Below are positions 13,978-62,866 of a stretch of DNA of 64,000 bases, in pieces; within the stretch, counting starts at the first letter, position 1; each line of letters begins with the position of its first letter. The DNA is from Orbicella franksi (Eukaryota), in assembly GCA_964199315.1 (NCBI GenBank), contig OZ116698.1, forward strand, positions 21,886,001-21,950,000. Reading direction: 5' to 3'. The notes under the pieces are model-generated. The model searched no databases. It saw only the letters and a list, made by a program, of their open reading frames with translations, and was not told where the DNA came from. A program made the position numbers and the translations under genes.

Positions 13978-15132
13978 TTATTCCGCTTCGATATCCTCAG
14001 CTTGCACAGTCAATTCAACGTCGTTTCCAAGACTACCGAGATCTGTGATTTGCAAGGAAGTTGATACTTGTTCGCATTCAACCACCGCTTGACCTCCAAC
14101 GTTTTGTGACATTATGACCCCCTGCGACTGATTACTTACTGAATCCGTCAAATCCAGTTCGCGACTCACGACTGATTGAGGCTGACTACCGTCGGAGATA
14201 CCGGCTGCATAGGATGCATCCCCGTTTCCAACGACCTTAGCTTGTTGAGAAGTTGCTACCTGATGAGAACCACCAGATGAAGCAGTTACGTTGAGCCTAC
14301 TTCCCTCCGAGTTGTTAGCTACTTCAACAGAAGCTTGCTGGGAGGCTGCATTTAAAGACGTTTCTCGAACGTCTTGTGAGAACTGTTGCTGAGGGTTACC
14401 GAGAATGGCAGAATTATGCAAACGACCATCAAAGCCACAGGCAGCACCTTCCCGAGCTGAATTTAAAGAGGAGCCTTGAACTTGTGATGAGACTTGTTGC
14501 TGAAGGTTACCGACACTGGCAGAATTATATAAACGACCATCAAAAACGGTGGGTCCCGTCATGAGCCTTTGAAAGGCAAAACCTGAATGTAATCCATTTA
14601 GGCCACTGTAGCTTCCCAACAGCGAGCCACCGAATGCCCCACCAGCTCTTGTTTGAGAAACACCGCCCAAGATACCAACTGATGGTAGAAAGAAATGGTC
14701 ATTGCGTGAGGACGGTAGTGATTGTAAGAAACCACTGCCCCGCGAAGCATCAAATCCACTCAGCGATCGTCCATGGAAAAAAGATGATGGTGAACGGGAC
14801 GAGAAAAGACGCTGACCAGCTGATGCTATGGAGGAAGAACCTGCGATGCCATAACCTCGATTGCTTAGGAATTGATCGTCTCCAACCCAAGAGCCTTGTA
14901 CCTGATGTCGCACATCACTTAAAGACTGGCTTAAAAGGGATCTGGTGTCTCTGGCCTCCCGATTCTGCCTTGCTTTACCGCTTGGACTAAGGGCAATTCG
15001 AGATTTTTCAAACATCCCACCTCGCTGCTGAGCGCTCGAGCTGAGATCCACCATTGATGATATCTGTCTACTGGTGCGACGATTAAGATCAAGGCCCCTT
15101 TCCAGGTTTGAAGAAAACCGTACATTTGTGTT
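13978..15132 (-). CDS. Coiled-coil gene A, terminal exon (Ser/Gly/Gln-rich disordered tail, 384 aa)
   Basis: Acceptor CCTTATCCAG| (phase 0) at 15132 extends ORF 13978..15054 in frame; TAA at 13978-13980. Confidence 0.8.
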   Translation of the reverse strand, partial: NTNVRFSSNLERGLDLNRRTSRQISSMVDLSSSAQQRGGMFEKSRIALSPSGKARQNREARDTRSLLSQSLSDVRHQVQGSWVGDDQFLSNRGYGIAGSSSIASAGQRLFSSRSPSSFFHGRSLSGFDASRGSGFLQSLPSSRNDHFFLPSVGILGGVSQTRAGGAFGGSLLGSYSGLNGLHSGFAFQRLMTGPTVFDGRLYNSASVGNLQQQVSSQVQGSSLNSAREGAACGFDGRLHNSAILGNPQQQFSQDVRETSLNAASQQASVEVANNSEGSRLNVTASSGGSHQVATSQQAKVVGNGDASYAAGISDGSQPQSVVSRELDLTDSVSNQSQGVIMSQNVGGQAVVECEQVSTSLQITDLGSLGNDVELTVQAEDIEAE

Positions 15133-15339
15133 CTGGATAAGGACAACAACAGATTATGCACATTAAGATTAGATTCATTTCTAAATGCTAGTGCTGTTTT
15201 AAATTACATTACTATATCAAAGAACCTCACCACACCATCTACCAGGTGGGTTGAGGGCGAGCGACATAGACGCTTGGTGGTCATGAGACGCGGCGAAAAA
15301 TAAACATAAACATAACTTAAAACTGAGACAGACACCTAC

Positions 15340-15516
15340 ATTCCTCGTTTTTGACTGGAGGGATCTTGTTTGGCGTTCTTCGATGTCGTCCATTCTGTCC
15401 TTTAGAGTGCTCATCTGGCTTTCTAATGCATTCCTTTTCGTTTCCATGGTGAAGTTGTTGTCATTCAGAAACTCAGTCCCTTCAGAAGAGTACCTCAAGG
15501 AAACAGGGGTGTGATC
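15340..15516 (-). CDS. Coiled-coil gene A, middle exon (59 aa)
   Basis: Acceptor GTTGTAATGCAG|GATCAC, donor AAT|GTAGGT, 177 nt, phases 0-0; short coiled coil KRNALESQMSTLKDRMDDIEER. Confidence 0.75.
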
Positions 15517-15815
15517 CTGCATTACAACATGAGGAGTATCAATATCGAACACTTCATATACATATTGTAAAAGATAAGAAAGTCAAGTCTCACCACAAAG
15601 GGAGCCGTGAATCATAAAGTATAAATGTGGAATGGAATGTGGACTGTGCATGGAGGCATAAGTAGGACAGTCTCGTAAGACCTTTGTCCAGCCACCATGA
15701 CAAATTGTCCCGACCTGAAGACAACTCAAGATATTTTAAAGTAGTAAGAAAAGAGCGTCTGTTAGCTCAATCTTTAGCACATTAAAATAAGAGGATAAGT
15801 AAGTTCAAAACTCAC

Positions 15816-18800
15816 CAATTTCTTGGAGATCACCATCGATGACTGCAACTGAGCAGTAGTTGCCTGTAGCCTCCTTTTTAGATCAACAATTCGCCTTTTG
15901 TATTTTTCTTCTAGACGATCCCTTTCCCGATCAAAGTCTTCTTGCATCTGAACTTTCTCTTGCTTGTAACTGACTTTGATGTCAGATTTCTCTTTCTTCA
16001 ACAACTCCACTTCTTGCTCAAGATCATAGATTCTATCTTCCATCTGTTTAGTCCCTCGTAAAAATCTCATTTCTAGATCCGTCTCAGATTTAAAGAGCGA
16101 TTCCTTCCTTGCAGATACACTTTTGTCTATAAGAAGACTGTAAGTGCTTTTTACTCCTTGACTAGAAAGCTTAAGCTGAATTTGCTTTCGCTGCTCTTGC
16201 AAGGAAGTAATCTCTTTCCTCAGTACACGTAGAGTTTCTTCGTATTTCTCCCTTTCTTTGTCCAGGGCAACTCGATATTCCATCTGCAGACTTTCTCTAA
16301 GTTGACTCTCTATGCTTGTTGCATCTTGCTCAAGCTCCGTTTTCTTATATTCGAATTTAACTTCCAACTGGTGTACTTCTCTCCGATGTTTTTCCTCCAT
16401 GCTCCGAATCTTGCTTTCGGTCACATTAAGCTTCCTCCTTAGGTCGTTCGTTGCGTTTTGGCCATCTTCTCTCTCTTTTCGTAGTATATTGCACTCGTCC
16501 GTCACCTTTGCCACGGTCTCTTTTATCTCTGCGATTCGGCTGTTGCTGTTCCCTCTTTCTTTTTTAATTTTGTTCAGAAGAGTCTCCTTGTCACGCTTCA
16601 GCTTCTTTACTTCTTCTATTAATTTATGGATGGTGTTATGGAGCACTCTACTCTCTCCTTCCCTGCCTCGGGTAGAGTTTCGCCTCTCTTCTTGTAACTC
16701 TCTTTTGAGGTTTTGTTTCTCATTTTCAAAGGCTTCCATTTGAGTTTTGATCTGCCTTCGTAGCTCGTCCATCTGTTCTTTGTGATCTCTAACTAGATCA
16801 GCCATACCTCCGCCTCCGTCTTGATAAGTTGCTACATCTGAAGTATTTCTAAGGCACGTGACCATTTCAACTGACTCTTTGGTTTCCCTAGAGCCCATTT
16901 TCTTAAGTTGCTCGATTTGATTGTCATAATCATCTATTTTACGTCTGAACTCCTCTTCAATCTCAGTTTTAAACTTCTTTATTTTTTGCCCGTGCTCGTA
17001 CTCCAGATCATCAATTTTTCGGCTGTGATTTCTTTCTGTGTCACGGAGCGTCTCTTTCAATTCCTTATTTTCACTTCTTAAAACATCTATCGTGCCCCTC
17101 AAATCGGATATCGTTTGATGAGAGGCAGAACTCACCCCCGGTTGATTTCCATTAAATTCACCGTTACCCAAAGTAACCTGATTGGTTACAAGTTCATTAC
17201 TGCCCGCGTTGTGTTGCCGAAGTCTATCCTCTATTTCATTTATTCGCCTTTCCATTGTTTTTCGCTCCTCTTCAAAGCGCCGTCTGTACGTTTCCTTCTC
17301 ATTTTCAAACTCGCTTCGAATTCGTTGTTTCTCTTCTTCTAAAATTCTGATTTCCTCATCGTATTTCCGTTTCCTCTCATATAAAGTGGTTTCAAGTTGC
17401 TCCGTCTGCTTCTTAAAAACCTCAACACTCTTGTCAAGTTCATCTTTCACAGTCTTGGCCCTGCCTCTCTCAAAGTTAATTTCCTCCGTTAGCTGAGTAG
17501 TTATTTCACTCTTTTTCCTCTCCAGACGCTCGTTTGCTCTTTCCAAGTCATAAATCTTAGTCTCGAAGGAACTTATCTCAGCCTCCATGCTTCTATTGAT
17601 TTTCACCTGCTCGTTGTACTTTTTCTCGATCATTTCCCTTTCGTTTACGATGTCGTTGATTTGCGACGTCTTGTCTTTGCTGTAATTCCTCACCCAGTCC
17701 TCTTTTTCATTTCTGAAGTTCTCTTCCATTTGCCGGATCTTCCTGGAGAGGTTGTCAACGTCCTCGGTAAGTCGTTTGTTCTTATCTTCGACCTGCTGCA
17801 CGCTCGACAGTGAATTGTCCAGTTCCTTTACCAGTTCTCTCTGTTTACGGATCATTTCATCTTTCTTAAAAGTGAGCTCTTCGACCTCCTCGGACAGCTC
17901 CGTAACTCTGTGCTCCAATTCCGTCTTTTTCTTGACATCTCGCTCGAGTACTCGGCAATTTTCCCTAAGCTCATTTATTTCGGCTACGAGATCATTCGAA
18001 TTTTGTCTACTGCTTGTATGTGACGTTTCACCCAAGTCACGATCATAACTGTGCTTGATATGTGTGGTATTAGAGGCTCCACCGCCGATATTATGCTCCA
18101 GCAAGTCGTTTATCTGGTACAAAAGTTTCTTGTTTTCCTCCTCTAGTCTCTCCTTCTTTCGAACCTCGTCGCCCAGTTTTCGTTTCCACTCTTCATCCGT
18201 TGACAGCGTTCGAGGCTCACTGGAAACAAGCTGAGCACCTGAGTGCGTTTGTTGCGCCCCGTTCGACTGCATCATCACCTGATTCACAGCAGGGCCACTG
18301 AGAAAGGAAACAATTTGTTCTCTTTCTTTCTCAAATTGGATCTTCAGTTCTTGAGCTTCATGAAAGAACCTGGCCTCCATGTCCTTTTTCTGTTTGCCAG
18401 ATTCTATCAATTCGCCCATCAGTCGCTCAATTTCCATCGATAATTCCGCTTTACTCTGGATTTGCTCTTCCAAATTTCGTTGCAGCTCGCTGACATCTCG
18501 TGAGTAGCTCTCTTCTAGCGCTGTCCTTTCGTCAATAACTTCATTTTCCGTCTTGTAGGCTTCCTCTATCTTGAGAAGTATTTCTTTCCTTTCTTCCTCT
18601 AGCTTACGATTGTTTTCGTCTAGCTGACGGGTTTGTTCTTGAAGTTGTTTGTTGCTGGCAATTTCCATCTCAAGTTTGATCTCCACTTGGTGAATTTCTT
18701 CCTCGTAGGCCTGTTTTATTTGCGACATTTGAAGTTCGTAGTCTTCTACGACTGTAGATTTGGAATACAGCTCATTTTCTAAAACCTTACTCTCTCTCTT

Positions 18801-19559
18801 GTACTCTCTGAGATTATCTTCGGCTTTTTTGTTCACTTCCTCGAGAAGTCGTTCCTGTTCACGGGTACATCTTTCTAATTCCCTCACACGATCTTCGAGT
18901 TTTGCCTTTTCCCTTTCTAGCCTTACAACGTCTTCTTCGAGCCACCTTTGTTTTTCGCTGCCATTTCCAGACACTCTTTCCTCCAATATGACTTTGCTAT
19001 TTTCCTGTTTGTCTATCAAATCGATGATCTGTTTAAAAAGCTCGTTCTCCTGTGCCAAGAGGGCCACCTCCTGCTTGTACATCTCAGTGTTCACCGCAAC
19101 TGAACTGTCGCTTGTAGAGCTGGTAATGAAGACTCCGCCACTGCTACCTAGCGAGGCTCCTACCAACCCGCCCGCTGTCATCGTTGCTGTGCCCGAACTG
19201 ACCCTTGTCTGTATGGCTGTCCTGAGGTGTCCGAACTGTGATTTAAGGTGGCTGTTCTCGAGCCGGAGTGTCTGTAGCTCTTCCTCGTAACTCGAGAGGT
19301 TCCTTGAAAGCTCGTAGAGCTTCTCCTCAAAATGGATCTTTTGGTCAAATTCGTGATGGAGTTTAATCTCCAGAGATTCCCTGTCTCTCTTTTCCCGTTC
19401 GTATCTCAGACGGAGGTCATCTCGGTCTCTAACCAACTGTCCCAAGTCGCTCTCGTAGAAAATAGAGTCAAAGTCAAGCTGTGGATCTTCTTGGAAGTCC
19501 AAGTAAGTCTCGGCTACCAAGTCCTTGGTCAATTCAGGGTCTTGCTCCCCGGAGTCCAT
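15816..19559 (-). CDS. Coiled-coil gene A, giant exon (1248 aa), uncharacterised long coiled-coil protein
   Basis: 3.7-kb open frame rich in E/K/R/L/Q. Acceptor CCCAACAG| lies 8 nt before the ATG; donor TTG|GTGAGT at 15816 is phase 0. Confidence 0.9.
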
Positions 19560-22500
19560 GGCCGATTCTGTTGGGTTAGATTTGAATTTATTCTTAATGG
19601 TGGTGGTAATTGAATATAATTAATTAAGATACAAAAAGTATATCACAAATTAGGCTACAAATATTGTGCAAATTTTTTTCCAGTACCCAGCACGACAACT
19701 GAGAAATTTTTTTTTGGTTAATGAGCAATTCCCCTCGCCTGTGTTCTGTAACATGATCAATTAAATGTGCAGATGGGTGTTATTCCCCATAAGACTGAAT
19801 TATATTATGTTAACGCCTGATCTACTACTATCACAAAAGGGAGAAAGTTGGCTTGCTCTTAGTCTTGGTTTTTACTTGTTTTCTGTTTTCAATCAACTCT
19901 GACAGCGGAATGTTTTGCTACCCTACATGAGAACAACACACTGTTAACAAATACTTTTGAATAAGTCCAGTTAACGGCGGAAGCTAACAAAAGAAGCGAA
20001 CCTTTTTGAGAATTAAAACTGGCAGCGATTAATTATCGACGTTATTACAAATGCTTCAAAACATAGAAATCTGTTGATGATATTTTAAAATTAATTTTAC
20101 TTAGGAAAAGGGTGAATTCGATTGTTTAGACGTTGCCGCTGTGTCGTTCTTATTAACTGGTAGTCCAACCGGTGACTGCATTCAGTCAGAGCACCTAATT
20201 TATTGAAAAAAAAAAAAAAAAAAAAAAAACTTAAAGCTTGGTATAACAAAATAAGTTAATCCCTTCAGTCGCCATGTCCTTAGCAACGGTTGTACTAACG
20301 AGTGTGTTTCATTTTCAGACAAGAACTCGTCCCCCAGTTTCCTATAACTGTTGAACAATTCCATTGTTTTAACTTAGTCCGCGCACTCTGCAGGAAAATG
20401 TATTCTCTTTGTTGCAAAAGCATAAAACTTTCCATGAATTTTCAGCAAGGTGTCACAGTCGTCAAGTACGTGATACTTTGGGCAAAGTGGGTTGCTTATT
20501 GAGATGAAATAGCTGTCAGAGTTTCCAGACCAACCTCGTTCTAGTAAACTATTTGGGAATATGCAATTGAGACTGAAATAAATGGAACATTTTTTTTCGG
20601 ATCAAGATATTTAAGCTTTATTATCTGTTTCGAATTCATGGGTGACCTGAATCTTAGAACTGGTCTATCCATTGCCAAATCCAACAATATACGATTTGGG
20701 ATTGTTCTCAGGCGACAGTGGTTACCTAACATATGTTACCGCATTCAAACTGCTGCAAATTGATCAGTGTGCGTGACGAGTAATGAGAATTCACCCAGCC
20801 AAATACACAATCATAACGACATTCTGAATTTTGATTTATGATAACGCCTTTCTTCCTTTCCACAGAAACTTGAATATAAAGAACATATGTGGAAGAAATC
20901 ACTGGAACAAGATACCACTGAAAGAGATATTTTCCCGATCCCTTTATTATCTAGATATTAAATTGGAATAATTCAGATATAACTATTTGCAATCTTCATT
21001 TACGTACACCTACCTGTGCTGATTACCAGCAGCTCTCTGAAGCCCCGATGCAGGAGTGAAATACCTCAGAGTTCAACCGAATGGTTCACTCTCCTATGCC
21101 GAGGCAAATAAACTTCCCAAGAGTGCGATTTCTTAGGATGAGAAAAAATAAATCCGTATGGACGCCAATTTAAACTCGCGCTAGAGACAATAATCCAGAC
21201 TTGAAAAGAAATACTGGTTGTGGTTAAAACAGAGCGCTTCGATTGGTCGGTGAAAATAGTAAATCAAAACATACTGACTTAAAAGGAAATGGTTTTGACT
21301 TCGGCTTTTGTCGCTGACATCCCCGACAGGGACTGCCAAGACGTTTGCGGTTTGAAATCAATGCCAGAATCCCACTGGTGAGTGTTCAAGGAGACCGTAA
21401 GAAACTTCTCTGTTGACGTCCTGGGGTTGACGTATGGCAAAATGAGTAAACTGCTGAAAGAAATTATAAAACTGGGAAACTTTGGCCATTGCCGATGCTT
21501 CAACAGTACTGAATAACAAACTCTGCATGAAACTATTGTAGCTATTGCAGTAATCAATCAGGTTGCAATCCCCTTCAAAGAAAATAAGATCAAGGTGTTC
21601 TCTGATGAAGTAAACCAGATAAATTCCGTGGTCGACATTAATTGACACTGCAAGTCGAAAGAATCTTAAGGACGTATTACAATGATTTCCTTACGCTATA
21701 CGCTAATCATTCTTAGTTACTAGCGATACAGACATTCAAACGAAACTTATTGTTTTACTAGTTTGGGGATGTTTTCTTTTTTTTTTCTTTTTTCTACGAA
21801 AGTTATTATATTTTTTTACGTTCTGGAGAGTTCTTTACTGACACTACGAAGAGTCGATCACGAGACCGAAAACAAGGCACGGGCGCGTAGGTCAGCGCAC
21901 GTGGACCTGTTTGTCTTAAACATTTTTTTTTTACATTTGAAGCTTGGGCACTCTTGCAAGTGAAAGGTATTCGTTCGTAACGACCTCATATTGATCGCTT
22001 CCCCGCGTGACTTCAGCAACGGGGGATGAAAGTGTTACGCCTGGACCACAGAAGGTTAGAACAATTAACATTTTAGCGAAAAGCATTAAAATCACTCAGA
22101 AGAGAGACCAAAGCACCGGAAATAAACCAATACTGTCTAGTGCAAGTTGATGGCGAGTGACAACTGAAGCGAAAAAAAGCAAAAAAAAAAAAAAGCAAAA
22201 AAAAAAATGAAGTGTCCCCATGGGGCCGTTTCTTTTTCTCGTGGCCTAGATTCCTGAGTTCAGTCTATCTTTAGCTTAAGCTCCATATAGCAAACTTAAG
22301 TTGAGGGTATGACCATTACTGGGTGCACAGAGCCGTTGAAAGCGAAAAGAAAAACGAAGATGTCAGAACTTCTCTCTGGATGATTCACGTCATCGAAGCA
22401 GATGTTCCCAGATTTCGGCCACAAGACTTATGTTTGCAGCCATCTTGTAATGGTTTGAAACCCCCTGAGCGCTTTCACACAACAATGCTTACAAATTCAC

Positions 22501-29809: not shown

Positions 29810-30982
29810 TTATCCTCGAAAACTCGGACCAGACTCCAGAAATCTCGGCAAAAGGAGCAACTTTTTTTCCTGCTGCGGCTTCGCTTCTGTTGTCGATTCT
29901 GTTACCTGATCTTGGTGTATATCAGACCTGGCAGGCCCCACGTTGGACAAGCTTCCCCGCGGTCTCACCGAGAAAGACCCTTGGCGCTGTTGTTCGTTCC
30001 TGCTTCTGAAGTCATTGTCCATGCTTCCCGATCCGGGCGTTATGACATCTCCGACGTGAACCCGCGTTGCTGACGAAAAACCGAATACGTTTCGCATGGC
30101 GCGTCGAAGTTCCCGCATTTTCCAGTAATACATGACCGGATTTACCGAGGCGTTTATCAACGCCACTGTTTTTGCAACTTCCCACAAAATGGTCTGATTA
30201 ACGCTGCTGAAGTCAGAGTCTGATTCCAAGTAATGAATCATGGCGTAAAAAGTAGGTGAGTAGAATATGAAAAACAACATCACCAGGTACAGCATGGTGG
30301 TCGACGACTTTCTATGTTTTCGTAAGTTCACAGATTGGGGTTGCAGCTTGGCTTGACTCTCAATGAGAGCTTTGTGACGCCGCAGTATCAGAAATAACTT
30401 AATATACGTAAAAAGCAATAGAAGCGCGGCTGCTGTAATAACAATAAGGCCGACCATTGTGAAACTGTACATATTAAGACCTAACGGCCAGGCGATGACG
30501 GACGCCGTGCAAAAGAACCAAGTTGACCCAATCGACGAGAGCGTCCGAGACATCGTGACAATTTCACGATATCTGAGGTGGAAATGTAAGGCGAGCCAGC
30601 GCTCGGTGCTAATCAACACCAAGGTACAGATCGATAGAAACATGAATAAGAGTAACAGGGTCTCTTTGGCATACCACAGCGCGCAGGAAAAGCGCAGTCC
30701 ATCGACGAGAATGGCATTGTGTGCGATGTACAGAGGTTGTATGACGCATCCCACCAAGAGATCCGTCGTGGCCAGTGAGCACAGGAGGACGTAGGGAGGA
30801 TTGTGCAAGGATGGCGTTTTCAAAATCGCGTAAATAACTGGCAAGTTCTGGAAGGTAGTCGTCAACGCAAAAATCGAATTCAACACGATGACCGCGATGT
30901 TAGTCCCGAATAGCTGACGTCGTCGCTCGGGATTATCGACCATAAAAGAACAGTTAGTTGTAAGGCTGTTGACCTCGGTCAT
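29810..30982 (-). CDS. Rhodopsin-class GPCR, melanocortin/adenosine-receptor-like orphan, single coding exon
   Basis: Seven hydrophobic segments; LATTDLLVG (TM2), ISTERWLALHFHLRY (TM3 D/ERY variant), FYSP (TM6), NPVMY (TM7); very short Cys-less ECL2; 5'UTR acceptor TTTTTTTCAG| at 31053. Confidence 0.95.
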   Translation of the reverse strand: MTEVNSLTTNCSFMVDNPERRRQLFGTNIAVIVLNSIFALTTTFQNLPVIYAILKTPSLHNPPYVLLCSLATTDLLVGCVIQPLYIAHNAILVDGLRFSCALWYAKETLLLLFMFLSICTLVLISTERWLALHFHLRYREIVTMSRTLSSIGSTWFFCTASVIAWPLGLNMYSFTMVGLIVITAAALLLLFTYIKLFLILRRHKALIESQAKLQPQSVNLRKHRKSSTTMLYLVMLFFIFYSPTFYAMIHYLESDSDFSSVNQTILWEVAKTVALINASVNPVMYYWKMRELRRAMRNVFGFSSATRVHVGDVITPGSGSMDNDFRSRNEQQRQGSFSVRPRGSLSNVGPARSDIHQDQVTESTTEAKPQQEKKLLLLPRFLESGPSFRG

Positions 30983-32672: not shown

Positions 32673-33120
32673 TCTTGCATGAAGTAAAATACAACTTGTT
32701 GTCAACCTCCTCCAATGGCTTTCAGAGCTAACAACGATACAGACAATTGTAAATAATGAAAAGCGCAATAAAAAAATACCCAGTGACGTCCTGCCAAATT
32801 TGCAAATATCTTTACTAAATTTGCATGGCTCTTGCACGAAGTAAAGTACAACTTGTTGTCAACCTCCTCCAATGGCATTCAGAGCTAACAACCATACAGA
32901 CAATTGTAAATAATGAAAAGCGGAATTAAAAATACCCAGTGACGTCCTCCCAAATTTGCAAATATCTTTACTAAATCTGCATGGCTCTTGCACGAAGTAA
33001 AGTACAAGTTGTTGTCAACCTCCTCCAATGGCATTCAAAGATAACAACCATACAGACAATTGTAACTAACGAAAAGCGCAATTAAAAAACTCCAATGACA
33101 TTCTGCTTAATTTGTAAATA
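32673..33120. repeat. Tandem array of about 2.9 copies of a 156-157-bp unit
   Basis: The unit start TCTTGCA(T/C)GAAGTAAA recurs at 32673, 32830 and 32986; the third copy is more diverged. Confidence 0.9.
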
Positions 33121-43400: not shown

Positions 43401-43557
43401 AACTCGATAGAAACGTGGTACACGTTTTTCATTTCTTAGATATAACTTTTAGGCAATGGTTTTTTCGCAAGCCCAGTTGTAACATAACATAACATAAACC
43501 AAGAGAGGATGAAACTGCGTGGTAACTTTATCCACGGAAGAATTTTTTGAGAGACAC

Positions 43558-47060: not shown

Positions 47061-50000
47061 CACTTGACCAACTGAAAATGTACTGACTCGTCTTCTATTT
47101 ATGTAAGAGCAAGATATGAATAATATAAGTCAAAATGACCAAGAAAATACGTGCAAAGGACGTAAATGGGTCAGCGGTCGTTATGGCGGACGGATGTCGA
47201 TTCTTTACCTCCGTACTTTTGCTGTTTCTTCTCGGTTCCAAACTTTTACTGGGACGGAAAATTGATTGGAACTGTCTTCCTGAAGATTCATTAGGGGATC
47301 AGGCTACCTCTAATCTCGCAAGAGTGATTAATTTGCCGATATATCAACTTCAACATTTAGCGAGGCGGATCTGCCATGATCTTGCTTCTGCTCCACGTAG
47401 AAGGCAATACTTCGCCTCTAGGATTTGTTACTACGCTAACTCGGACAGTACTTTTCATCAAGCTCGTCTCCTCACAAGTGGCGATGTTTCGCTTAACCCT
47501 GGTCCGATAATTAACTCCTCAAGGTGTTCTGTTTGCACGAAGAAAATTGCTAGAAATCACAGAGCCTTGAGTTGCGATCAATGTGAACTTTGGTGTCACA
47601 TGAAATGCGGTCAAGTGAAACTGAGCCAGTATAAATATTATCAGCAAAAGGATCAGTTCAACTGGATCTGTCCGACATTTCTCTTATCCGTATTACCTTT
47701 CGCTGAAGTATCAATTTCGTCGGATGAAGATGGTCATCCGGAGTTGGATAACACGCCCTCTTCAGTCGAACAAGAACCTGCTGTCGACCACACTGATATC
47801 TACAAATCGTTAAAAGACTCCCTTGGCAATAAAGATCTGAAGGTAGGACACATCAATGTAAACGGTCTTATCAACAAGTTAAATGAAGTCCATGTCCTTT
47901 TAAATGAAGTGAAATGGCATATTATGGGTATTACAGAGACTCATCTGACTGCATCTACCCCTGACAATCTACTAAGAATACCTGGTTTTGACTTTGTCAG
48001 GAAGGATAGATCCAGCTCTAAGGGAGGTGGAGTTTTAATTTACTATCAAGAAAGCTTAACTGTCCATCAAGACTTAACATGGGATATTCAAGATTTGGAA
48101 GCAGTTTGGATTAATGTCACCATACGCTCTCAGTCAACCCTAATTGGATGTCTTTATCGTCCACCTAAAGATATGACATTTTTCAGTTCCTTACAGGGTC
48201 TGTTAAACAAGATCTGGGTCAAAAGAAAGAATGTTGTGCTGATTGGTGATCTAAATTCTGATCTACTTCCTGCCCCTAATCAAGATCAAGATTTATCCTT
48301 CTGTGGAACCAAACTTCAAAGGATTCTAAACATATTTGGCTACCTGAATGTTATCAAATCCCCCACAAGAATTACTAAGAACAGCACCACATTACTGGAT
48401 CTTGTCATCACTAGCCCTAATTTAAACTGTCTCAAGTCTGGCTCTATAGACCTTGGTATTTCTGACCATCATCTTGTATATGGAGTTTTTGCTCTCACAA
48501 AAAGCAAACCAAAACCAAAAATTGCCTTTGTTAAAGATCATAAATCCTTAGACTTAAATGAGCTTAAAGCTGATATGGCCAGAGCCCCATGGTACATTAT
48601 TGGTGCTCTTGAAGATAGTGATGATAGTGTATTTTTATGGGAATCTATGTTCAAGAGCATTCTTGACAACCACATTAAGAAAAGAATTGTGAAGATCAGA
48701 GATGGATCCCTTCCCTGGATGAATTCAGAAATTAGGAAGGCTATGAATCGGTGATACAAATACCTAAAAGAAGCTCATGTCAATCCTGGTAATGATGAAT
48801 TATGGTGCCGCTACAAACAGCAACGGAACAAAGCTAAGGCAATGCTAAGAAAGGCAGAGGCAGCATATTGGCTTAACCTTTTTGAAAATGCCAACTCACC
48901 AGGGGATTTTTGGAAGGTTACAAACCGCATTCTGAAGAAAAGCAAGATCAAAAAATGTGGGCCGATACAAGATAGAAATGGAAACATCGTTACTGGAAGC
49001 AAACAGAAGGCTGATTATTTTAATGATTTCTTTTTAAATATAGCCCTAGATCTAACCAGGGATTTAGGCCCACTCACCCCTGATACCACCAACTTTATCT
49101 ATAAAGTCTGCCCTACTACGTCTAGTTTTTCAGTGGAGTGGAACATAGTTCAGGAGATTGTACAGAAATCCATCAACCCAAATAAAGCAATGGGTTTGGA
49201 CCACATTTCCCCAAGAGACCTTAAGTTATGTGAGTCCTCTGTTGTACAAGGGCTCTTTGAAATTTGTATGAAAAGCAGAGCAGATTGCCAATTCCCTATC
49301 AGTTGGAAGAAATCCCAGGTAACTGCAGTTTTCAAAAAGAGCAACAGGTTAGATGTAAATAACTATAGACCTATATCAATCCTAAATGTTCCTAGCAAAA
49401 TTTTGGAAAGGGTGGTTTGTAGATCTTTTGATAATCATTTGACCTCTCACAATCTCCTATCTGATAGACAATGGGGATTTAGGAAGGGTCATTCGACAGA
49501 AAGCCTTTTGTTGCACCTTACTGAAGTGTGGAAAGAAGCCTTGGACGATGGGCTTAAAGTAGGCGTTTTGTTCATTGACTTTAGGAAAGCCTTTGATTGT
49601 GTAGATCATGTCATTCTGGGTGAGAAACGTAAGGCCCTGGGAGTGTCAGATGATATGTGGATATGGCTGATGGATTATTTAGCAAATAGAAGCCAATTGA
49701 CACAAATAGATGGTGCATTTTCAGAATCTAAACCTGTAAAAATTGGGGTCCCTCAGGGTTCCCTGTTGGGACCTAGGCTTTTTATTACTTATGTAAATGA
49801 TCTTCCAGACAGCATTAGAAGTGGCGAAGTTTACATGTATGCTGACGACACTACCATTTATACCATTGGTAATACTACTGATGAGGTTGCTATAGCTCTC
49901 CAGGTGATATTAGATCAGCTACAAACCTGGTGGCAAAAGAATAGATTAATTATTCATGAAGGGAAATGTGATGCATTACTCTTGGATACAAAACCCTTTA

Positions 50001-50950
50001 TTGGCCCTCTGAAGGATTTAGTCTGGGGAGACAAAACCAATGAATACAGATCTTTTTCTGTATGTCTTGGTATAGCCATTGATGTAAGACTCTCCTGGGC
50101 CCATCATGTAAAATCTGTCTCTACCTCATACAGCTCTAAAGTTAAAATGTTAAGACGCATAAGCTTTTTACCAAAAGCCACACTAGAAACAATTTATTAC
50201 AAAACAGTCATCCCAAGCGTCTTATATGGTATGGCTGTGTGGGGCTCTTGCTCAGATTATTTGATGAAAGATCTAGAACTAATCCACCTCAGAGCAGCAA
50301 GACTTATCCATAAACTACCAAGAGACATGGAAGACGAAACAGTACTTATAAATGCAAATTGGATGCCAGTAAAATATTTTTATTGTTCTCGTATTCTAAA
50401 TTTAACGCATAGAGCTTTTTATAATCTAGGTTTAGATGATGTTAATAGTCTAGTTGTTAAAAACGCTTCTTCTTATAGTCTCAGGAAATCGTTAAATGTT
50501 GTTGTATCTAGGCCAAGAACTGAACAGGGCCGTCGTTCATTTAAACACAGAGCTGCAATCGCCTGGAACTCTTTACCTGACTCTGTCAAACAGCTTGAAA
50601 ACCCTCTTTCTTTTAAAAGGAAGATAAAATCGATCAAGACCTATGTCAGAGACATCAGTTTCCAAAAGGAATGCTCTGTAAATTATAATAAGAACCCTGA
50701 ATTTAGGTATTTTTAAATTATTTGATTACTCTTTTTATCGTTATTGTATATATTATTTTAGTTTTATGACAATTGTATTGTAAATTTCTGTTTCTCTTAT
50801 TTAGATTTAGTAGTAGTAGGTCCACATCAGCTGTACAGTTGCTTATTTTAAACCTACTTATCAAATAAACGTATGTATGTATGTATGTATGTATGTACGT
50901 ATGTATGTATGTACGTCCGTACGTATGTACGTACGTGCGTACGTACGTAC
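47061..50950 (+). mobile_element. CR1/L2-type LINE, near full-length ORF2 (2A-like motif, PHD, APE endonuclease, RT)
   Basis: ORFs 47135..48754 and 48842..50716 are one frame broken by a single TGA at 48752-48754. APE motifs GHINVNG, ITETHL, KGGGV, YRPP, GDLN, LDLV, SDH; RT motifs YRPISIL, DFRKAFD, GVPQGSLLGP, YADD. AATAAA at 50864 is followed by a (TATG/TACG)n tail. Confidence 0.95.
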
Positions 50951-51035: not shown

Positions 51036-51360
51036 GTTTTGAGCGGTCTAGGTGGAAATTAGTACTATTGTTAAGAGTAGAAAAATGAGAATGAGAATGC
51101 CTTTGTACCCTTGTCCTTTTTTATGTATTTGGTGGAAAAACTGACCTGAAGTTGGAGGGTGGGGGGGGGGGGGGGTGGAAATTCATGCTCAGAAACTGAT
51201 TGCTGCCCATTCTCCCTCAAAAATGTAATAGTCTATCCCTAAGGTGTGTCTGATAAGCCTCAGTAAACCAACTTAACACTGAGGGGCATTTACAACTGAG
51301 CATAATTTATTTCTCAAGGGGGTAAAAAGCAACTTCAACTGAAAAGCTTTATCACTAGCA

Positions 51361-52936: not shown

Positions 52937-52975
52937 GACGACGTTTCGACGTTGAGCTAACGTCATTATCAAGTC
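52937..52975 (-). ncRNA. Minimal hammerhead ribozyme motif, U3-A8 variant (PLE2 left arm)
   Basis: Reverse complement of 53928-53966. Confidence 0.7.
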
Positions 52976-53927: not shown

Positions 53928-53966
53928 GACTTGATAATGACGTTAGCTCAACGTCGAAACGTCGTC
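53928..53966 (+). ncRNA. Minimal hammerhead ribozyme motif, U3-A8 variant (PLE2 right arm)
   Basis: GAC-UUGAUAA-U-GACGUU[agcuc]AACGUC-GAAAC-GUC-GUC; stems I and II covary relative to PLE1. Confidence 0.72.
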
Positions 53967-54399
53967 GTTTTTTTAAAAAAAATTTTAACTTTCTCAATAT
54001 GCTTAGAAATATTTTATCGCAATTTTTTATAGTTAAATGTTTAGAAAAATCGCTTCTTATTCGTAAACTAAACAGAAACCTTTGAAAAGCGTACAAAATT
54101 TAGGATCGAAACTAAGCAATCAACAGATGGCAAAGTTTCCTCGCACTTTGTTGGCTTTCAATTTTGTTGAGATCTAGTGTTCGTATTCTTCAATGTCATT
54201 GGTTAATTTGAGAAAAAAACATAGCTATCGCTTGTTGTCAAATAACGTTCTGATTGGTTAATTCTTTTCCAAGTGGCCCGGTACGAGTAGTCGCACTGTA
54301 AACGGTTCAAGTACTGTACTCAGGAGAGGTACCGTGAATTACCTCTTCAAGGAAAACTCAAGGGATTAAATGCTTTATGAATTGATTGACTGAAAGATT

Positions 54400-54410
54400 A
54401 ATCGATACAC

Positions 54411-54445
<35 letters not shown>

Positions 54446-54740
54446 CTGATTAACTGACTGATTCACAGACTGATTGATTGATGAACTGAATGAACGATTA
54501 TTGATTGATTGAGTGAGTGAGTGAAAAACCGACTGACTGACTGAGTGACTGAAATGAATAAATGGAGGATGAATGAACTGATGGATTGATTGATTGATTG
54601 ATTGACAAATTGATTGATCGATTATGATAATGATAATACTACTAATTTATAACGATGATAATGACGATGATGATGATGATTGAAAATACTAATAAAAGAT
54701 TACCACTTCAGTTATAAAACTGAATCGATTGATTGACTGC
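54400..54740. repeat. Compound microsatellite (ATTG)n/(GACT)n/(GAGT)n/(GAT)n
   Basis: Direct reading of the tandem 3-4-mers. Confidence 0.9.
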
Positions 54741-56544
54741 GTACATATGTAAGCAAGGGGTTACACCTGAAACGTCAATTTGTTTTATAAATATAATTTT
54801 ACTTACTTAATAATTATTAATCTCGAGCAAATCCCGATGTCTTAAACTCCTTTAAACATGTTCTGTTTGCAAGTTCTTTAATTTCAGTTTCATGAAACAG
54901 AAGAAAAAGCTAATCTTAGTGCTTACAACAAACGTATTGCTGGCCATCAATAAATAATTCCTACAAATTAAAAGATAGATAAATAAATAAATAGACAATT
55001 ATATTATGTTAGAAATTCCATGGGATTATCAGAAAAACGCAAGTAAATGATTGATGTTTTCAATTGCTTGCTACAAAAGTATATGCAAGTCAATATTTCA
55101 TCTTCTTTGTGGTTACAGAAAAAAAAAATTTTGCAAGTTACTGCAACTATACAGTCTGAAATAACTCGACCTTCACGATTTCTTGTACTCGGAATAAACC
55201 TTTTGGCTGCAAAGTTTTGAATTTCCTGTTAGCAAACAGTAAGCGTAATTTCACGATCACGTGGTGAAATAAATACCACTGGTATTTATTTACACCACGT
55301 GATAACAGTATCTTATTTGCAAATCCCACAACGCTTGACAATTTCACGGAGAGAAGCACGATGTAAAATCACCACAGAAGAAAGAGCACCAGTATTCGTT
55401 CCAGAACTGATTGTAATGGTTTGGTGTACCTTTATCTTAAAACCGTTAGCATAACCATGCCCTGACACAAGTTACCCTATCAAAAAATAATATTTATAAC
55501 TTCTCCTTACACAATCATTACATCAAAAAGTACGCAGGCGATGAGAATAAAGAAAATCGTCAATTTTACAATATAATATTGATGCAACTCCAAATTCTCA
55601 CAAGCAACAAGAAAAAAATTTAAGACATTAACTAACAGGAATTCATCGATTCATACTTCAAGCCTGGGACAGAAAGACTTCAGGAATCAGGGTCTATCTC
55701 CTTTGCCTTTATCTTAAGGCCTTGTGATGCCTTGTGAATATTGATTTACATTTGCATGACAGCCACCAGTAACAAGCAGCGATCGGTTGCACAGAAGAAA
55801 CAACAAGTCGCCTTACAACTATCGTACTTCGAAAAAGATCTAGAAAATTCCTGCACATCCCACGGCTAATTTTTTACAAATGCGGAAGCTATCTGGTTAT
55901 TGATATTCAATGTAATCAAAATTCATCAAATATATTTTCCACCTCTGTTTTTTTTTCTAAAATACTCTTTACACTTCAGACAACAGGTTGTGTTGAATCG
56001 CGTTTGCGTATGTAAATTAAAAATTGTGGTCTTTGTGGATGTCAAGAATTTGGCTATCCGTAAACTGCATACAGTAATACTCTTTGCAGTTACATCTGTG
56101 GATTGAAAAATTTTAACTGCCAGAAAATTCCTTAACATTGCTTTGTTACACTGCAGTCAGGAATGTTCCAGGGGACTGTCAGAAGGACAACGATATTATG
56201 AGATTCAAGATGCTTGCCAAAAAAGGTGTTTGTTCATCTGGTGGTTGCTTTCAATGCTTGGTACTTAGCATTTATGAGTGACACGCCTTGGATATAGTCC
56301 CATGACTGGAATTATTACGGCACGTTTAGGATTATTTCATGGATTACTGGAACAAAAAACAAATTCTCCTACAAAAGAAATAATTTATGTGGAATTCTTT
56401 TTAAACGCCTGGCACAGTATCAATACAGCATAAAGGGAATGTCTTGGCTTAACGAAAGCGAGGAACTATGCCAAACTACACTCGAATTTTCCGGAATAAA
56501 GAAACGTTCTTAAACATTTTCAAGACAGAATCGTCGTCGCACAT

Positions 56545-56573
56545 TCAGTGTCAGTACTCAGGAACATTTACCG
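56545..56573 (+). promoter_or_regulatory. Candidate initiator and short 5'UTR exon of gene B
   Basis: TCAGT initiator-like motifs followed by donor CCG|GTGAG, 134 nt upstream of the giant-exon acceptor at 56707. Confidence 0.3.
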
Positions 56574-56735
56574 GTGAGATATCAAACTATCAAGCACTTT
56601 CACCTTTTTGCTTTAGTTGATTTCAGAGGCGGGGGATAAACAATTGCGGCTTGCAAGCCGCGCAGGTTGATGTAAACAATTGTTCATAGCTTTACGTGTT
56701 GTTTTAGTTGGCCTGGGATTGATCAAGATTTCTGG

Positions 56736-59700
56736 ATGGATGAACAGCAAACTGAGGAAGGATTCACGGAGCAGGAGGACGAAACTTCTAATTTAAGTGG
56801 AACAGAAAACAACGAAACAGCAGCTAACGATGAAGATGACACTTCTGTGGGAGAGAATATTGAAGAACCCCTGTTGAGAGGAGACGAAGATGAATTCATA
56901 TCACACGGGGAGGACGATGCCTGTGAAAAAACAGAATTAAATGCTTCTTCTACTGGTCAGGAGTCTGAAAAATTGAACGAAGCTGAGAATGAGGAAGAAG
57001 AGGGCGCAACAGAACTGTTAACGGAGGGAATGTCCAGTAGTGCCGATCACGAGACAACAATAAGTCTGGGAGATAATACGACCAAGTTAGACGATGATGA
57101 TGTTGATTTACTCAGAGACTCTGACTCAAACGACACGTTAACTGTGGACAAAGAAGGAGAAAACAGAGATGACAACCAAGAAGCAGGCGGATTATCCATG
57201 GAAGAAATGTCTATCGACACTAACAAAGAGTTCGACGAGTTTGATACTAAGCTCGCGCAGCCTGTAGAGAAGAAATTGCCCTTTGTTTCTGAGACAGATT
57301 CAAACGAATTCCTCTCACAGAATGAGGGAGAGTATGAGACTGATCAAAATGATGAGGGAAGACAATACGAACATGAAGATGACACGGTGATGGACGGCGA
57401 CGAATTGTCGCAAAAATCTGAAACCTCGACATTAATAGACGACAACAGTGTTGACTTAACAGATTCCTTGCTCTACACCGAAACAAACGAGGGAGACGAG
57501 GATGATGAACAAATGGACCTGACCGGTACGCTAACCGAGGAAATCGTACCTGATAACACTGACGGATATTTACAAGCATGCGATAACGAATTCGATGGGA
57601 TCTCCGAAGTACAGAATACTGAAAGGGAAAGTCTTCTTCCACACACTGAAAGAAGGGACGATGACGAGGACACAGAGAAGGAAGACAATCCGGACAGGAA
57701 TGAGGAAGGCCGGGAAAGTGGCTTTCTTGAGGAGCAGGAAACCTACAACGATAAGGACAGAGTGTTACCACAAGACGAAGATGACAGTGACAAACACAGA
57801 GATCCAGAAGACACATCGCAAATAGAAAATCCCTCTTTATATCCTCATACAGACAGAGAAGTCATAGAGCAAGATGATGAATTACAAGGAGGTTCCTCAG
57901 GGGAACAGGTCGAAAGCAGATCTCAACCGGAAGATGATTTCTCAGCAGGACTTGCCGACGGCGGTATTTCAGGCGGTTTCTATGGTGACGATGACTTGTC
58001 CTCGATATTTTCCGATGACGGTCGAGACATATCTAGCATCCTTCAAGAAAACAGTATTCTAAAAGAGGCCATGATGCAGCTAAGAAAGGATAACCCAGAA
58101 GGGTTTACTGACACCGTAAGTGAAACGTCAGACGAGGCTGACGATTTCTACATGTACCCGTATGGTGGAGACAGCAAGATGCAGACACGCAAATGGATGG
58201 CAGACAAAGATTTAAGCGACGCAAGGTTAAACGAGATTTTGCGAGAGAAGAGGGACTCCCAAGCGAAAATGCGACAGCTAGAGAGGGAAAAGGCCATGGT
58301 CGAGCGTAAATACAGACAGGACAAAATGGAAAGGGATTTCCTAGAGGAAAGATTCACATTAAAATCATCTAAACTGGAAGAGGAGATACGCAATTTAAAA
58401 CAGGAAAATCAACGCCTTAAACGAGGAGGTCCACAAGGAAAAGGAACAATACCTAGCGCTGGAAATAAGCATGTTGGCATGACAAAAGAACTCCCTGGAA
58501 AAGCATTGACTAGCGAGAACGGGGACAGTGGCTTTCCAGCACGAAATGGCTTCGCAATAGACATTGCCATTTTGGCAAAGGAAAACGAGAAATTAAGCGA
58601 AATAATTGACCACCTGCAAGACACTCCCAGGAATGATCCATTAGACGACTTTGTTGACAATTTGGACAAATACGTACCCAAGGATGAATACATTAAGCTT
58701 GAAAATGAAAAACTCAAACTGGAAACAGCATTACGGGAAAGGGAAAGAAATTTAAAGGAACAGGAGAGAGAGATGGAAGAGACGAAGTTTGACCTGGAAG
58801 AAGAAATAGAAATTCTAAAGGAGAACCTGAAAAAGGCTGAAAATAAAAACAAAGAGAAAACGAAACTCTTGAGCCAAAATGACATAAAAATGATAGATAT
58901 TAAGACAAAATTAACAGAAAAGGTGAGCAAGCTTGAAAGTAAACTAGAGCTGGAGGTTTCGAAGAAAGTAAAACTTGAATCTGTCATTGTCAATTTGGAG
59001 AAATGCAATGGTGGCTTTGAAAAAGAAATCCAAGATATGAACAATCGAGTTCAAAAGCTTCAAGAACAAGAACGGGAGATGGAGGCAAAGAATCGTCGGG
59101 AACTGGCGGAGTTGCAGGAACGTTTGCGAAAGGAAACTGAAGAAAAGAGTAAGCTCGCACGAAATGTCGAAGCACTTCTACAAGACCTAATGCAGCTGAA
59201 AAACAAAATGCTCGAAGACACAGAAAAGCACACCAAAGAACAAGAAGAGCTACGAGCCTCGTTTGAAACTGAGAAAAGAAAGATGATGGCCGCACAGGAG
59301 TACGATAACCGCCGACTTAAGTCTGAATTAGATGACGAAAAGAAAAGGAACCAGCAGCTTATAAGGAGAATGGCGGAGATTCCGGGGGAGACAATCGTTT
59401 CAGTAATGGAAAACACGACGGAAGCCGGTTTGTTTGAAAGCCCCGTAAATGACATCGAGGCTGCTCTTCTCGAGAGGACGCTTCAAGAAGAGGAATACAA
59501 AGAACCAGAGAAGGATAACATGGGTATGGACTTGAATGACGAACAAACTAGAAGTGAAGGCCAGTTGTGGAATGTCCCAAAAGCCACTGAAGACAACAGT
59601 GGTGACATCAACAAACTACAGAGAAAACTTGCGGAGGTGACAAAATGCAATGGCATCATGCAGCGCAGGAATAAAGAAATAGAAGAAGAGAATATCAATT

Positions 59701-61928
59701 TGAAGGAAAAGGTAGAGCGAATAGGACGAGATGTGAGCAAGATGAGAGAACTGGAGGGCAAAAACGAAGAGCTGCAGGAAGAAATTGCAAGAAATGCAAA
59801 GAAACGAACCGAGATGCAGAATAAACAGGAAAATATGATGGGAGAAATCGAGGACATCACCAAAAAGCTCAGCAAGGTGGAGGGAAACAATAATGACCTT
59901 AGTGACGAGGTGGACCGCCTGACAAAGAAGATCAAAGCCATGGAACAAGAATTCACTGAGGAAAAATCAAAACTTACATCCTCGTTGGAACAAGAAAAGA
60001 CAAACGCAATCGAAGAAACTGAGAGACGATTAGAAGAACAAAAAGCAAAGAGTAAAAAACTGGACAACGAAATAGATGATCTGCAATCTGATATTAAGAC
60101 TCTCAAAGACGCAAAGCGGGCCGCAGAAGAGAAGTATGTCAATGACACGAGAGAACTCGTCGAGAGGCACAATTCCGAGTTAGCAAGCGAACGAGAAAGG
60201 TATCGCCAACTGCAAGATGAATTAAACAACAACGCTGGAGCTGTGCGACGAGTGACTGAAGAATGGGAACAGATGCTACGAAATGCTGTTTCAAGATACG
60301 AGGAAGATCTGCAGAAAAATGAAGACGAGCGAAGAAAAATGGCGGACGAGTTTCAGCGTCAAAAGGAGGATATGAGGGCCAGATTTGACAAAGAAAAGGC
60401 AAAGTTGGAAACGCGTGTTCAAGAGATCGACAAAATAGCACGATCACCGTTCGAAAACGAAATAATGAAGGAAAACGCGGCAGTTAGTTACCAAGATCAA
60501 CAGAGTGACTTGCTATTCGAAGACACACCTACACCCAGAACAAGTTTTAGCGAAGAGGGCCATAATATTAGTAATGATATCGCAGAGAATCAAGAGAAGA
60601 TAAATACTCTTGCATCGCAAAAGCGCAAGGTTGAGCAGAAACTTGCTCAAATGCAGAAAACGCACGATAAAGAAAAAAATGATTTGTGTAACGAATACAA
60701 AAAAGAAAAAGAAAAACTCGAAGAAACACTGACTGAAGATTACAAACGAAGACTGGACGAAAGCAAGAAATACTACGAGGGCCTTGTTGAAGACCTAAGA
60801 AGGAAACACGAAAAAGAGGAGGAAGAGTTGGCAGACAGATTCAAGAGAGAAAAGCGAGAACTTGAAGACAAAATGAAAGACGATTTTTCGAGTAATTTGT
60901 CTTCAAGGAGTGCAGGTCTCGAAAACAAGATTCAAGATCTTGTTTCCCAAAAGGTCCAGGAGCAGAAGGACATAACAAAGAAAACCGAAGAGAAATGTAA
61001 CACAGTTCTTTTACAAATGAAAAACAGGATGAGAGAAGTGCAGAGCGAACGGAACGAGATCAAAAGAAAGTTCGAGAAAGAAAAGAAGGCCTTAGAAGCG
61101 ACAATACAGGCTTTGACCAAAGAACTGGAGAAAGTAAAACAAGAGAAAAAAGATCTCAAAAAGAAACAGAAGAAAGATAAAGCAGAAATGGAGGAAGCGT
61201 TTGAAAACGAGAAGAAAGAGATGAAGCAGATGTGGGAGAAGTGCAAACTCGACACAATCAACCAAATTGAAGAAGAATGGACAGAAAAGATGAAAAGCGA
61301 AAACGCAAAGTCTGAAATTCTAAAAGAAGAACTACAAGAAAATTTCGAAGCAAGGATAAAGCAAATGAAGCTCAAGTTCAAAGCGGAAAAAGCAGATTTG
61401 GAGCGCCGATTAGCCGATGCTATCTCCGAATCTAATGCTCTCGAAGTAGCCAAAAAGGAAGTAGAAGCCTCCTTAGAAGAAGATTATAGACGAAAACTGC
61501 AAAAGGAGAAGGAAAACATCGAAAGCACACTACAGGGCCTGCGACAGGAGATAGAAAGGCTGCAAGAGCACCGAAAACAACTTCAGAATCAAATGTCCAA
61601 CAGAGAAAGTCGTGCAAACGCCAATGCTCTACCATCGTTGGAAACTAACTCAAAAGTGTTGGCAAAGTTGGACAATGAATACCAGGAGCATATGAAGAGA
61701 GAGAAAGAGCATCATGAGAGCAGAATGAAGGAAATGGAAGAAGAAATCAATAGGCTTCACGATGATCTTTCCCAGATGAAGGTGAAAGCTCGTCAAGAAA
61801 AAAGCCGAGTTAAGGCGGAATTTGAAAAGGAAAGAGAGGAAATCGAAGAGCAATTCGACAAGGAGCGGAACGAATGGCGAACGAGGATGAACTTTATAAC
61901 TATGATGCAGCCAAGAGAGATACAAAGA
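56736..61928 (+). CDS. Coiled-coil gene B, giant exon (1731 aa): acidic N-terminal region plus long coiled coil
   Basis: 5.2-kb open frame; acceptor GTTGTTTTAG| at 56707; donor AGA|GTAAGT after 61928 (phase 0); collinear with gene A. Confidence 0.9.
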
Positions 61929-62199
61929 GTAAGTTTAACTTTATCTTTGCAAAGCTTGTCGACAGAAAACTACCATAATACCGCACGTCTCTAGGCCTTC
62001 AAAACTGCAAGTCAAAGAAATTCCTCTTTTATAATACAGTTTGGAAGTAAACAAATGGTTTACACTTTTAATCTCAAATGTGATCAAAATCTAACTCACC
62101 CTCATAATATCAATAAGTTGGCACAGCGCAGAGAAGCGAAGCGAAGCGAAACGTCAATTTCCGATAGAGAACTATTGATTTGATACACCACCAAATTAT

Positions 62200-62428
62200 G
62201 AGGGCCTCCCAGGGGTTTTTGGGGAAAAAGGGAACATGATCATTTATTTCAAGGAAACAAGGGATAATTTTGGGTTTAATTTCATGGAATAAGGGATATC
62301 TCTGCTATTAGAGGGAACTTTGAGAAAAAAATTTAGGGAACAGTGGAATTTATTAATAGGGAACAAGGGAGAAAAAGTGAAATTTTCAAGGGAACAAGGG
62401 AACATGCTACCCCCCTTGGGAAGCCCTC
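62200..62428. mobile_element. Small MITE in a gene B intron
   Basis: Ends GAGGGCCTCCCAGGGG / CCCCTTGGGAAGCCCTC, with internal GGGAACA repeats. Confidence 0.65.
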
Positions 62429-62719
62429 AACTCTTTCAAAGGAGTTACGCGTCAAGCTCAAGAAGCACGTAGCTAAAAAATCTAACAGAGGAGCAATCTT
62501 AAGAGAAGGCAAACATTTTGTTTCATTTTTCCAGTAAATAACAAAACAATTATAACAATAAAAACGCCGTGTGCAACAGTTTAAAACACATTTTCTTTGC
62601 AATGATCAAAGGTATCTGTTGCCTTATATTTGTCAAACCAAATTTGGCACCCTAAGAACATAAAAACGCTAAGTTTAGCAATAAGAATTATTTCACGTTT
62701 GCTTCTGATCATTTTTCAG

Positions 62720-62866
62720 AGGTCAGCTCATTTTGATAGACGTTCGCGTGACCTGAGGGAAAGAGGCTATCACCACAGTGAGAGAGTCACTCCTAGAATG
62801 CATAGCAGTGGGGAAATATCAGGCCCGCAACGTTTTGACGTGTTATCATCGACTGTGGAACTATAG
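62720..62866 (+). CDS. Coiled-coil gene B, probable terminal exon (48 aa)
   Basis: Acceptor CATTTTTCAG| phase 0; RSAHFDRRSRDLRERGYHHSERVTPRMHSSGEISGPQRFDVLSSTVEL-TAG. Confidence 0.6.
   Translation, partial: RSAHFDRRSRDLRERGYHHSERVTPRMHSSGEISGPQRFDVLSSTVEL

Follow-up and report, generated by a model that had tools for sequence, protein, structure and literature searches.

What do two giant coiled-coil genes have to do with each other when they lie back to back and share the same architecture? The question is raised by a 64,000-nucleotide stretch of the Orbicella franksi genome (hereafter the window; contig OZ116698.1 of assembly GCA_964199315.1, positions 21,886,001 to 21,950,000 of the forward strand), in which gene A on the minus strand and gene B on the plus strand diverge from start codons 37.2 kb apart. 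An earlier note on this DNA had described the divergent pair, with its spacing of 37 kb, correctly, and had gone on to suggest that the two rods form an obligate heteropolymer analogous to type I and type II keratins. Our analysis points elsewhere: A and B appear to belong to a set of six related hexacoral proteins, all cytoplasmic scaffolds of segmented coiled coil, each of which most simply dimerises with itself while its disordered ends provide specificity, a reading to which we assign a probability of about 0.55.

The homology of A and B is firmly established. In a composition-adjusted BLASTP comparison, residues 31-1202 of A and 490-1689 of B form a single collinear alignment of ~1,250 residues (176 bits, E-value 4e-48, 25% identity, 48% positives), and all five pairs of sequence blocks that had been quoted as evidence of block-by-block alignment fall inside it. 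As a control, an E/K/L-rich giant coiled-coil gene that adjoins B in an Acropora-type contig was compared with B and gave an E-value of only 0.53. In addition, a profile hidden Markov model (HMM) of the rod (profile A2, 1070 positions) matched only 94 proteins at an E-value of 1e-3 or better among 1.84 billion. Because the control gene failed to match and the profile is this selective, the similarity reflects homology and not composition; chance or compositional resemblance was ruled out by the alignment, the control and the specificity of the profile taken together. A matches positions 3-1068 of the profile (1436 bits) and B positions 1-1069 (1334 bits), both being among the sequences from which the profile was built, while the related O. 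franksi genes C and D, introduced below, and the independent matches gave E-values of 1e-80 to 1e-133.

The shared rod is segmented. AlphaFold2, run with the family alignment, predicted six helices in the A rod (residues 208-420, 454-491, 522-779, 815-888, 925-1140 and 1158-1238), separated by five disordered linkers and without a compact fold (mean predicted local distance difference test score, pLDDT, 71; predicted template modelling score, pTM, 0.26). The predicted helices are 38-258 residues long and sum to ~880 helical residues, which would span roughly 130 nm if extended, and the linkers lie at conserved places in the rod. Indeed, not only the linkers but also the heptad register is conserved: a strict assignment reaches about a third of the rod, and there 98-100% of aligned positions have the same register in A and B; a loose one, reaching 65-89% of the rod, gives 72-76% agreement, where 14% would be expected by chance. 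The matching register that had been claimed for the two rods is thus borne out.

A and B are not alone in carrying this rod. The 94 profile matches map collinearly to one rod. A tree divides them into five clades with good support (A, B, C, D and X), in which the only named proteins, all uncharacterised, come from stony corals and a sea anemone. O. franksi has one gene per clade, all on the same chromosome; X, D and C follow one another on the minus strand, 430-450 kb ahead of the window. Genes C, D and X resemble A and B in having the same rod module, in being mostly single-exon and in their location on this chromosome, and differ from them in their ends; the rod lies in one giant exon in A (1248 codons) and B (1731 codons), and X, D and C are likewise long open frames. 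A sixth and more distant gene, E, starts 5.9 kb past the stop codon of B, just beyond the end of the window and on the same strand as B. Relatives of E are matched by the rod profile (P0127, E-value 3e-9; P0135, E-value 6e-7), the E family aligns to the rod profile in hhalign with a probability of 98% and an E-value of 2e-13, and the first 85 residues of E match the first 75 of C (E-value 1e-7).

In the tree of the rods, A groups with D and not with B (Shimodaira-Hasegawa-like approximate likelihood ratio test support, SH-aLRT, 93). Forcing A and B to be exclusive sisters costs 12.3 log-likelihood units (approximately unbiased, AU, test, p = 0.023), and this arrangement is therefore disfavoured, although the group was named after the tree had been seen, and the test, being post hoc, is suggestive only. 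The clades also show that the ends of A and B are long-standing: clade A includes outgroup members with a His/Cys-rich start and a Ser/Gly tail, and the outgroup members of clade B likewise have acidic heads, so the Ser/Gly tail is old within clade A and the acidic head old within clade B. Clade C, which includes a protein of the sea anemone Actinostola, comprises giants of 5,500-7,400 residues whose rod closes the protein. In the O. franksi C protein, ~7,300 residues of the same E/K/L-rich composition lie upstream of the rod, which is without the first ~309 profile positions, and no internal repeats of the rod module were detectable in C with the rod profile. Gene D has a head with 11% Met and with Gly/Gln/Thr repeats, and a His/Cys-rich segment at residues ~1490-1540.

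Ahead of the rod lies an N-terminal module (N-module) of two short helices flanking a linker of Ser, Gly and Thr, and marked by a pattern L-A-x-E-N-x-x-[FL]-x-x-I-[IL]-[DE]; in A it carries the motifs EEELQxLRxEN and LAQENELFKQIID. It is present on inspection by eye in clades A, B and D; an HMM search with the N-module recovered outgroups of clade A only. In clade D and in non-scleractinian members of clade A (P0074, P0075, P0080), the N-module is preceded by Cys/His-rich stretches such as HHHCC and CCCGEHS, which scleractinian A proteins are without. This may be a metal-binding segment that was lost in scleractinian A.

The linkage of A and B, which the earlier note had proposed to check by synteny, is conserved. 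Four more coral assemblies show the two genes head to head, with starts 7.3 kb (in the Acropora-type contig), 77.6, 46.5 and 42.4 kb apart, making five coral genomes in all. Since orthologues of both genes, and the arrangement itself, are found in Acropora-type (complex) as well as in robust corals, the duplication is old, as had been supposed, and the arrangement predates the complex/robust split. However, B and E are also adjacent in both genomes examined (the Acropora-type contig and O. franksi), and X, D and C are linked in O. franksi. As other paralogues are linked too (X-D-C; B-E), linkage is not specific to A and B; it looks like a property of the whole cluster and not of the pair alone, and the head-to-head order most likely survives from local duplication in a slowly rearranging cluster X-D-C ... 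A-B-E.

A and B are real, transcribed genes under purifying selection. Transcripts of both were present in the polyA libraries of several adult-coral studies, and together in studies P1, P4, P6 and P8. RNA assemblies recovered at least 0.76 of B in all 14 runs and at least 0.5 of A in 6 of the 14, a weak measure. Intact orthologous open reading frames (ORFs) are present in dozens of coral assemblies (39 for A, down to 49% identity; 30 for B, down to 58%, its orthologues ranging over 58-93%). The ratio of nonsynonymous to synonymous substitution rates (dN/dS), computed against an orthologue 88-93% identical, is 0.35 in the A rod, 0.40 in the A tail, 0.17 in the B rod, 0.10 in B residues 411-490 and 0.53 in the B acidic head. 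Overall, A evolves faster than B (dN 0.052 versus 0.033).

The exon structure of both genes can be given (Table 1). Gene A encodes 1691 amino acids (aa) in three coding exons, the first of which encodes the rod and, ahead of it, the N-module and a short acidic head. Both introns are GT-AG, and both were confirmed as joints within one RNA contig of the polyA run X1 (15815->15515 and 15340->15132, skipping 299 and 207 bases). A contig from the same run that spans 16361-19602 extends the transcript to at least 19602, and the model is consistent with the NCBI models of Oculina patagonica (P0017, by tblastn) and Stylophora pistillata. Gene B encodes 1779 aa in two exons, and the predicted junction, ...QR/RSAHF..., is identical in a spliced relative (P0052), so that the basis of the second exon is this relative and not reads of O. 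franksi. Both giant exons close with a phase-0 donor, as had been noticed from the sequence: GT after codon 1248 of A and GTAAGT after codon 1731 of B. In B orthologues of 58-74% identity (P0053-P0069), the giant ORF ends after ...NSQV (around B residue 1640, position ~61650) and continues into junk, as it would at an intron donor; in O. franksi and close relatives, the exon continues for 90 codons past this point. The difference looks like an intron gain or loss between coral lineages.

Table 1. Coordinates of the genes, protein parts and spacer elements. Positions are those of the window unless preceded by C1 (chromosome) or L021.
Feature	Position	Strand	Remarks
ORF of gene A	15774-19559	-	1261 aa
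A coding exon 1	15816-19559	-	1248 codons, phase-0 end before GT donor
A N-module	18939-19442	-	residues ~40-207 (alignment A1)
A rod	15834-18938	-	residues 208-1242; family module of ~1070 positions (profile A2)
A exon 2	15340-15516	-	59 codons; GT-AG on both sides
A exon 3	13978-15132	-	most of the 443-aa Ser/Gly/Gln-rich tail, to stop codon
Spacer between A and B start codons	19560-56735		37.2 kb
Intronless rhodopsin-family G protein-coupled receptor (GPCR) ORF in spacer	29810-30982	-	390 aa; full seven-transmembrane domain, E-value 1.7e-25
Long interspersed nuclear element (LINE)-type retrotransposon without long terminal repeats, in spacer	47135-50716	+
LINE ORF 1	47135-48754	+	PHD finger and endonuclease (EEP) domain
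LINE ORF 2	48842-50716	+	reverse transcriptase
ORF of gene B	56736-61994	+	1752 aa
B coding exon 1	56736-61928	+	1731 codons, phase 0; donor GTAAGT at 61929
B acidic head	56736-57965	+	residues 1-410
B conserved pre-rod segment	57966-58205	+	residues 411-490; motif DDLSSIFSDD
B rod	58674-61925	+	residues 647-1730; same family module as A rod
B exon 2 (predicted)	62720-62866	+	48-aa basic tail and stop; acceptor AG at 62718-62719
Gene E (sixth, distant)	C1:21954723-21958631 (would be window 68723-72631); L021:5924-9832	+	single exon, 1302 aa
Gene X	C1:21434621-21437623	-	2076-codon frame
Gene D	C1:21446680-21455412	-	2910-codon frame
Gene C	C1:21463173-21487544	-	8123-codon frame, 8117 aa from first Met

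In contrast to the rod, the ends differ from one family member to the next. The B head, which had been put at roughly 450 aa, measures 410 aa and is strongly acidic (D+E 34%, net charge -114, isoelectric point 4.05), but the first ~400 residues keep only this acidity, with 21-32% column identity among coral orthologues. Its length varies as well: ~1050 ORF residues precede the rod in the Acropora-type orthologue versus 490 here. The A tail, residues 1249-1691, is 443 aa long (roughly 440 had been reported) and rich in Ser (17%), Gly (10%) and Gln (9%). As for the idea that these disordered ends are complementary, they are present and different, but they are one case of a family-wide combination of conserved rod and variable ends and not a feature that sets this pair apart.

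By sequence comparison, the A/B family is lineage-restricted and has no name in Pfam, PDB or the ESM Atlas, in line with the first impression that no named family could be recognised. Pfam returned only sub-threshold noise for A, B, the ORF of the A tail, 12 family members and relatives of E; searches of PDB by sequence and by profile gave only the generic background of myosin tails and apolipoproteins; and no Atlas cluster identified the rod, the matches being spread over unrelated coiled-coil families of the centrosome and of trafficking. In the literature on giant cnidarian coiled coils, the coral skeletal matrix and cnidarian ninein, we found no paper on this family. The Pfam models of rootletin, FAM184, CEP290 and other centrosomal coiled-coil families gave no match, nor did Pfam detect a golgin GRIP or GRAB domain in A or B, which also have no membrane anchor. 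In Acropora millepora, NCBI lists a 'centrosomal protein of 290 kDa-like' (P0176, XP_044172675.1) of 3563 aa in which a complete D-type rod and a complete X-type rod occur together; the model evidently joins two neighbouring members of the family. As the name was given automatically, and to a fused model, it is no evidence of homology to CEP290.

How might such proteins work? We looked for a segment hydrophobic enough to serve as a signal peptide or membrane helix and found none in either protein (maximum 19-residue hydropathy 1.23 in A and 0.64 in B), and since no stretch of this type is present, A and B are taken to be intracellular. Each rod would form a dimer, parallel and in register and most simply with a second copy of itself, and this dimer would serve as a long tether or scaffold. 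Each paralogue would then owe its own partners to its variable ends, such as the acidic disordered head in B, the Ser/Gly/aromatic low-complexity tail in A, the Met/Gly/Gln/Thr-rich head in D and the ~7,300 residues ahead of the rod in C. Our best guess for the location would be the centrosome, the cilium or the cortex. With regard to cilia, RFX X-box motifs, a marker of cilium genes, gave 18 matches in the window where 13.3 were expected, and none lay within 4 kb upstream of either start codon.

Whether A pairs with B or with itself is the point on which the keratin analogy turns. We counted g-e' charge pairs for in-register parallel dimers in four species pairs, a crude count over 17-80 sites, and A:B in no case exceeded the mean of A:A and B:B (difference -0.01 to -0.15, with every confidence interval reaching or including 0). 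If A and B were obligate partners in a cnidarian-specific filament of the keratin type I/II kind, with divergent linkage preserved for co-regulation, then one could cite in its favour the head-to-head order kept in five coral genomes, the short spacer in the Acropora-type contig, where a shared promoter would be possible, the agreement of A and B in heptad register and linker positions, their transcription in the same studies and the difference between their ends. There is also a general likeness to intermediate filament proteins, namely a segmented alpha-helical rod with linkers at conserved positions and low-complexity flanks at head and tail, and the Gly/Ser/aromatic tail of A resembles keratin end domains in composition. 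However, the family has five clades plus E, that is five or six paralogue types in place of two complementary classes, and A sits with D in the tree; the charge count gives no hetero-pairing signature; four of the five genomes have a spacer of 37-78 kb, and in O. franksi it has a GPCR gene and a LINE inside it; A evolves faster than B; B is far more complete than A in the RNA assemblies, for what this weak measure is worth; and other paralogues are linked too. The family rod is moreover ~1,070-1,200 residues long, compared with ~310 in intermediate filaments, and gave no match to the corresponding Pfam model, Filament (at an E-value of 0.1 or better for A and B, and of 1 or better for the 12 family members), and a keratin-10 fragment appeared only at background level (E-value 0.0097) in the PDB profile search. 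Linkage and matching register are the only positive evidence for pairing, and the register would be common to any two paralogues of this family, so the keratin analogy is unsupported beyond linkage. We regard the obligate heteropolymer as distinctly unlikely. A broader version, in which X, D, C, A, B and E would constitute an undescribed cnidarian-specific cytoskeletal polymer system, with A and B co-assembling through their matching rods and the polyanionic head of B and the Gly/Ser/aromatic tail of A forming two filament surfaces, strikes us as highly improbable.

The family could alternatively be a divergent anthozoan expansion of ninein-type centrosomal proteins, with a role in microtubule anchoring or dynein recruitment, which we consider unlikely. 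Like ninein and NINL, the family has a very long, E/K/L-rich, segmented helical rod and no catalytic domains, and the rod-related neighbour E carries a precomputed match to Ninein_long_CC (PF27974, Pfam 38) in the Acropora-type contig, as do 2 of 11 relatives. The same precomputed match occurs in 1 of 39 A orthologues and in none of 31 B relatives, and coiled-coil models cross-match easily. In the Atlas, the language-model neighbours of A and B are mostly coiled-coil proteins of centrosome and cilium (scores 0.91-0.95), with ninein at rank 45 for B; rootletin, CEP290, PIBF1/CEP90, SCLT1, SDCCAG8 and FAM184A are among the scaffolds nearest to the two proteins, but these neighbours are scattered over many unrelated families, share only 107-133 of 256 features, are flagged 'probably wrong' by the Atlas search itself and have no counterpart in a sequence match to the Pfam models of those families. 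Nor is the N-terminal EF-hand region of ninein to be seen: Pfam found neither EF-hand nor any other domain in A, B or E and its relatives, and E begins at its own Met, with upstream ORFs that show no visible similarity to the family (these were not scanned for EF-hand domains). A further alternative, which we hold to be very doubtful, is that large parts of the rod are stable single alpha-helices, or ER/K-type spacers, and the proteins monomeric rulers or springs. Many 28-residue windows have ~43-55% charged residues, opposite charges at i/i+4 are frequent, and the helices of the isolated monomer in the AlphaFold2 model are long, with pLDDT 75-88; but AlphaFold2 draws long monomer helices for true coiled coils too, leucine makes up 9-10% of the rod, and the loose threshold places 65-89% of the rod in a register that is conserved between paralogues far above chance. 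Several observations do weigh against the family of self-dimerising scaffolds that we favour. Windows with a strong hydrophobic pattern at a and d take in no more than 33-35% of the rod residues, and about half of the residues are charged, so parts of the rod may, by this pattern, be single alpha-helices and not coiled coil. Homodimers and heterodimers were weighed against each other only by the crude charge count, over 17-80 sites, and restriction to hexacorals is drawn from few named members together with the absence of other matches.

Other features of the window lie in the spacer between the two genes and outside it. As the spacer holds the GPCR ORF and the LINE, A and B have no shared compact promoter here; in the Acropora-type contig, where the spacer is only 7.3 kb, no ORF comparable to the GPCR was called in it. 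A tandem repeat with a 156-bp unit (2.7 copies, 94% matches) is found at 32673-33088, and another, with a 168-bp unit in 1.9 copies, at 550-876. Downstream of A, at 7622-8882 on the plus strand, two ORFs resemble the first and second halves of a pentraxin at sub-threshold level (E-values 0.005 and 2e-4), and are probably two exons of one pentraxin-like gene.

Among the structures built from long coiled-coil proteins are centrosomes, ciliary rootlets, Golgi tethers and filaments. Such proteins evolve fast, which is why lineage-specific ones usually go unannotated. Reef-building corals offer a case, namely a whole cluster of giant rod genes, one with a frame of 8,123 codons, that is conserved, transcribed and under purifying selection and whose members are nameless. 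To learn whether cnidocytes, ciliated epidermis, calicoblasts or sperm use these rod proteins could bring to light a structure peculiar to cnidarians.

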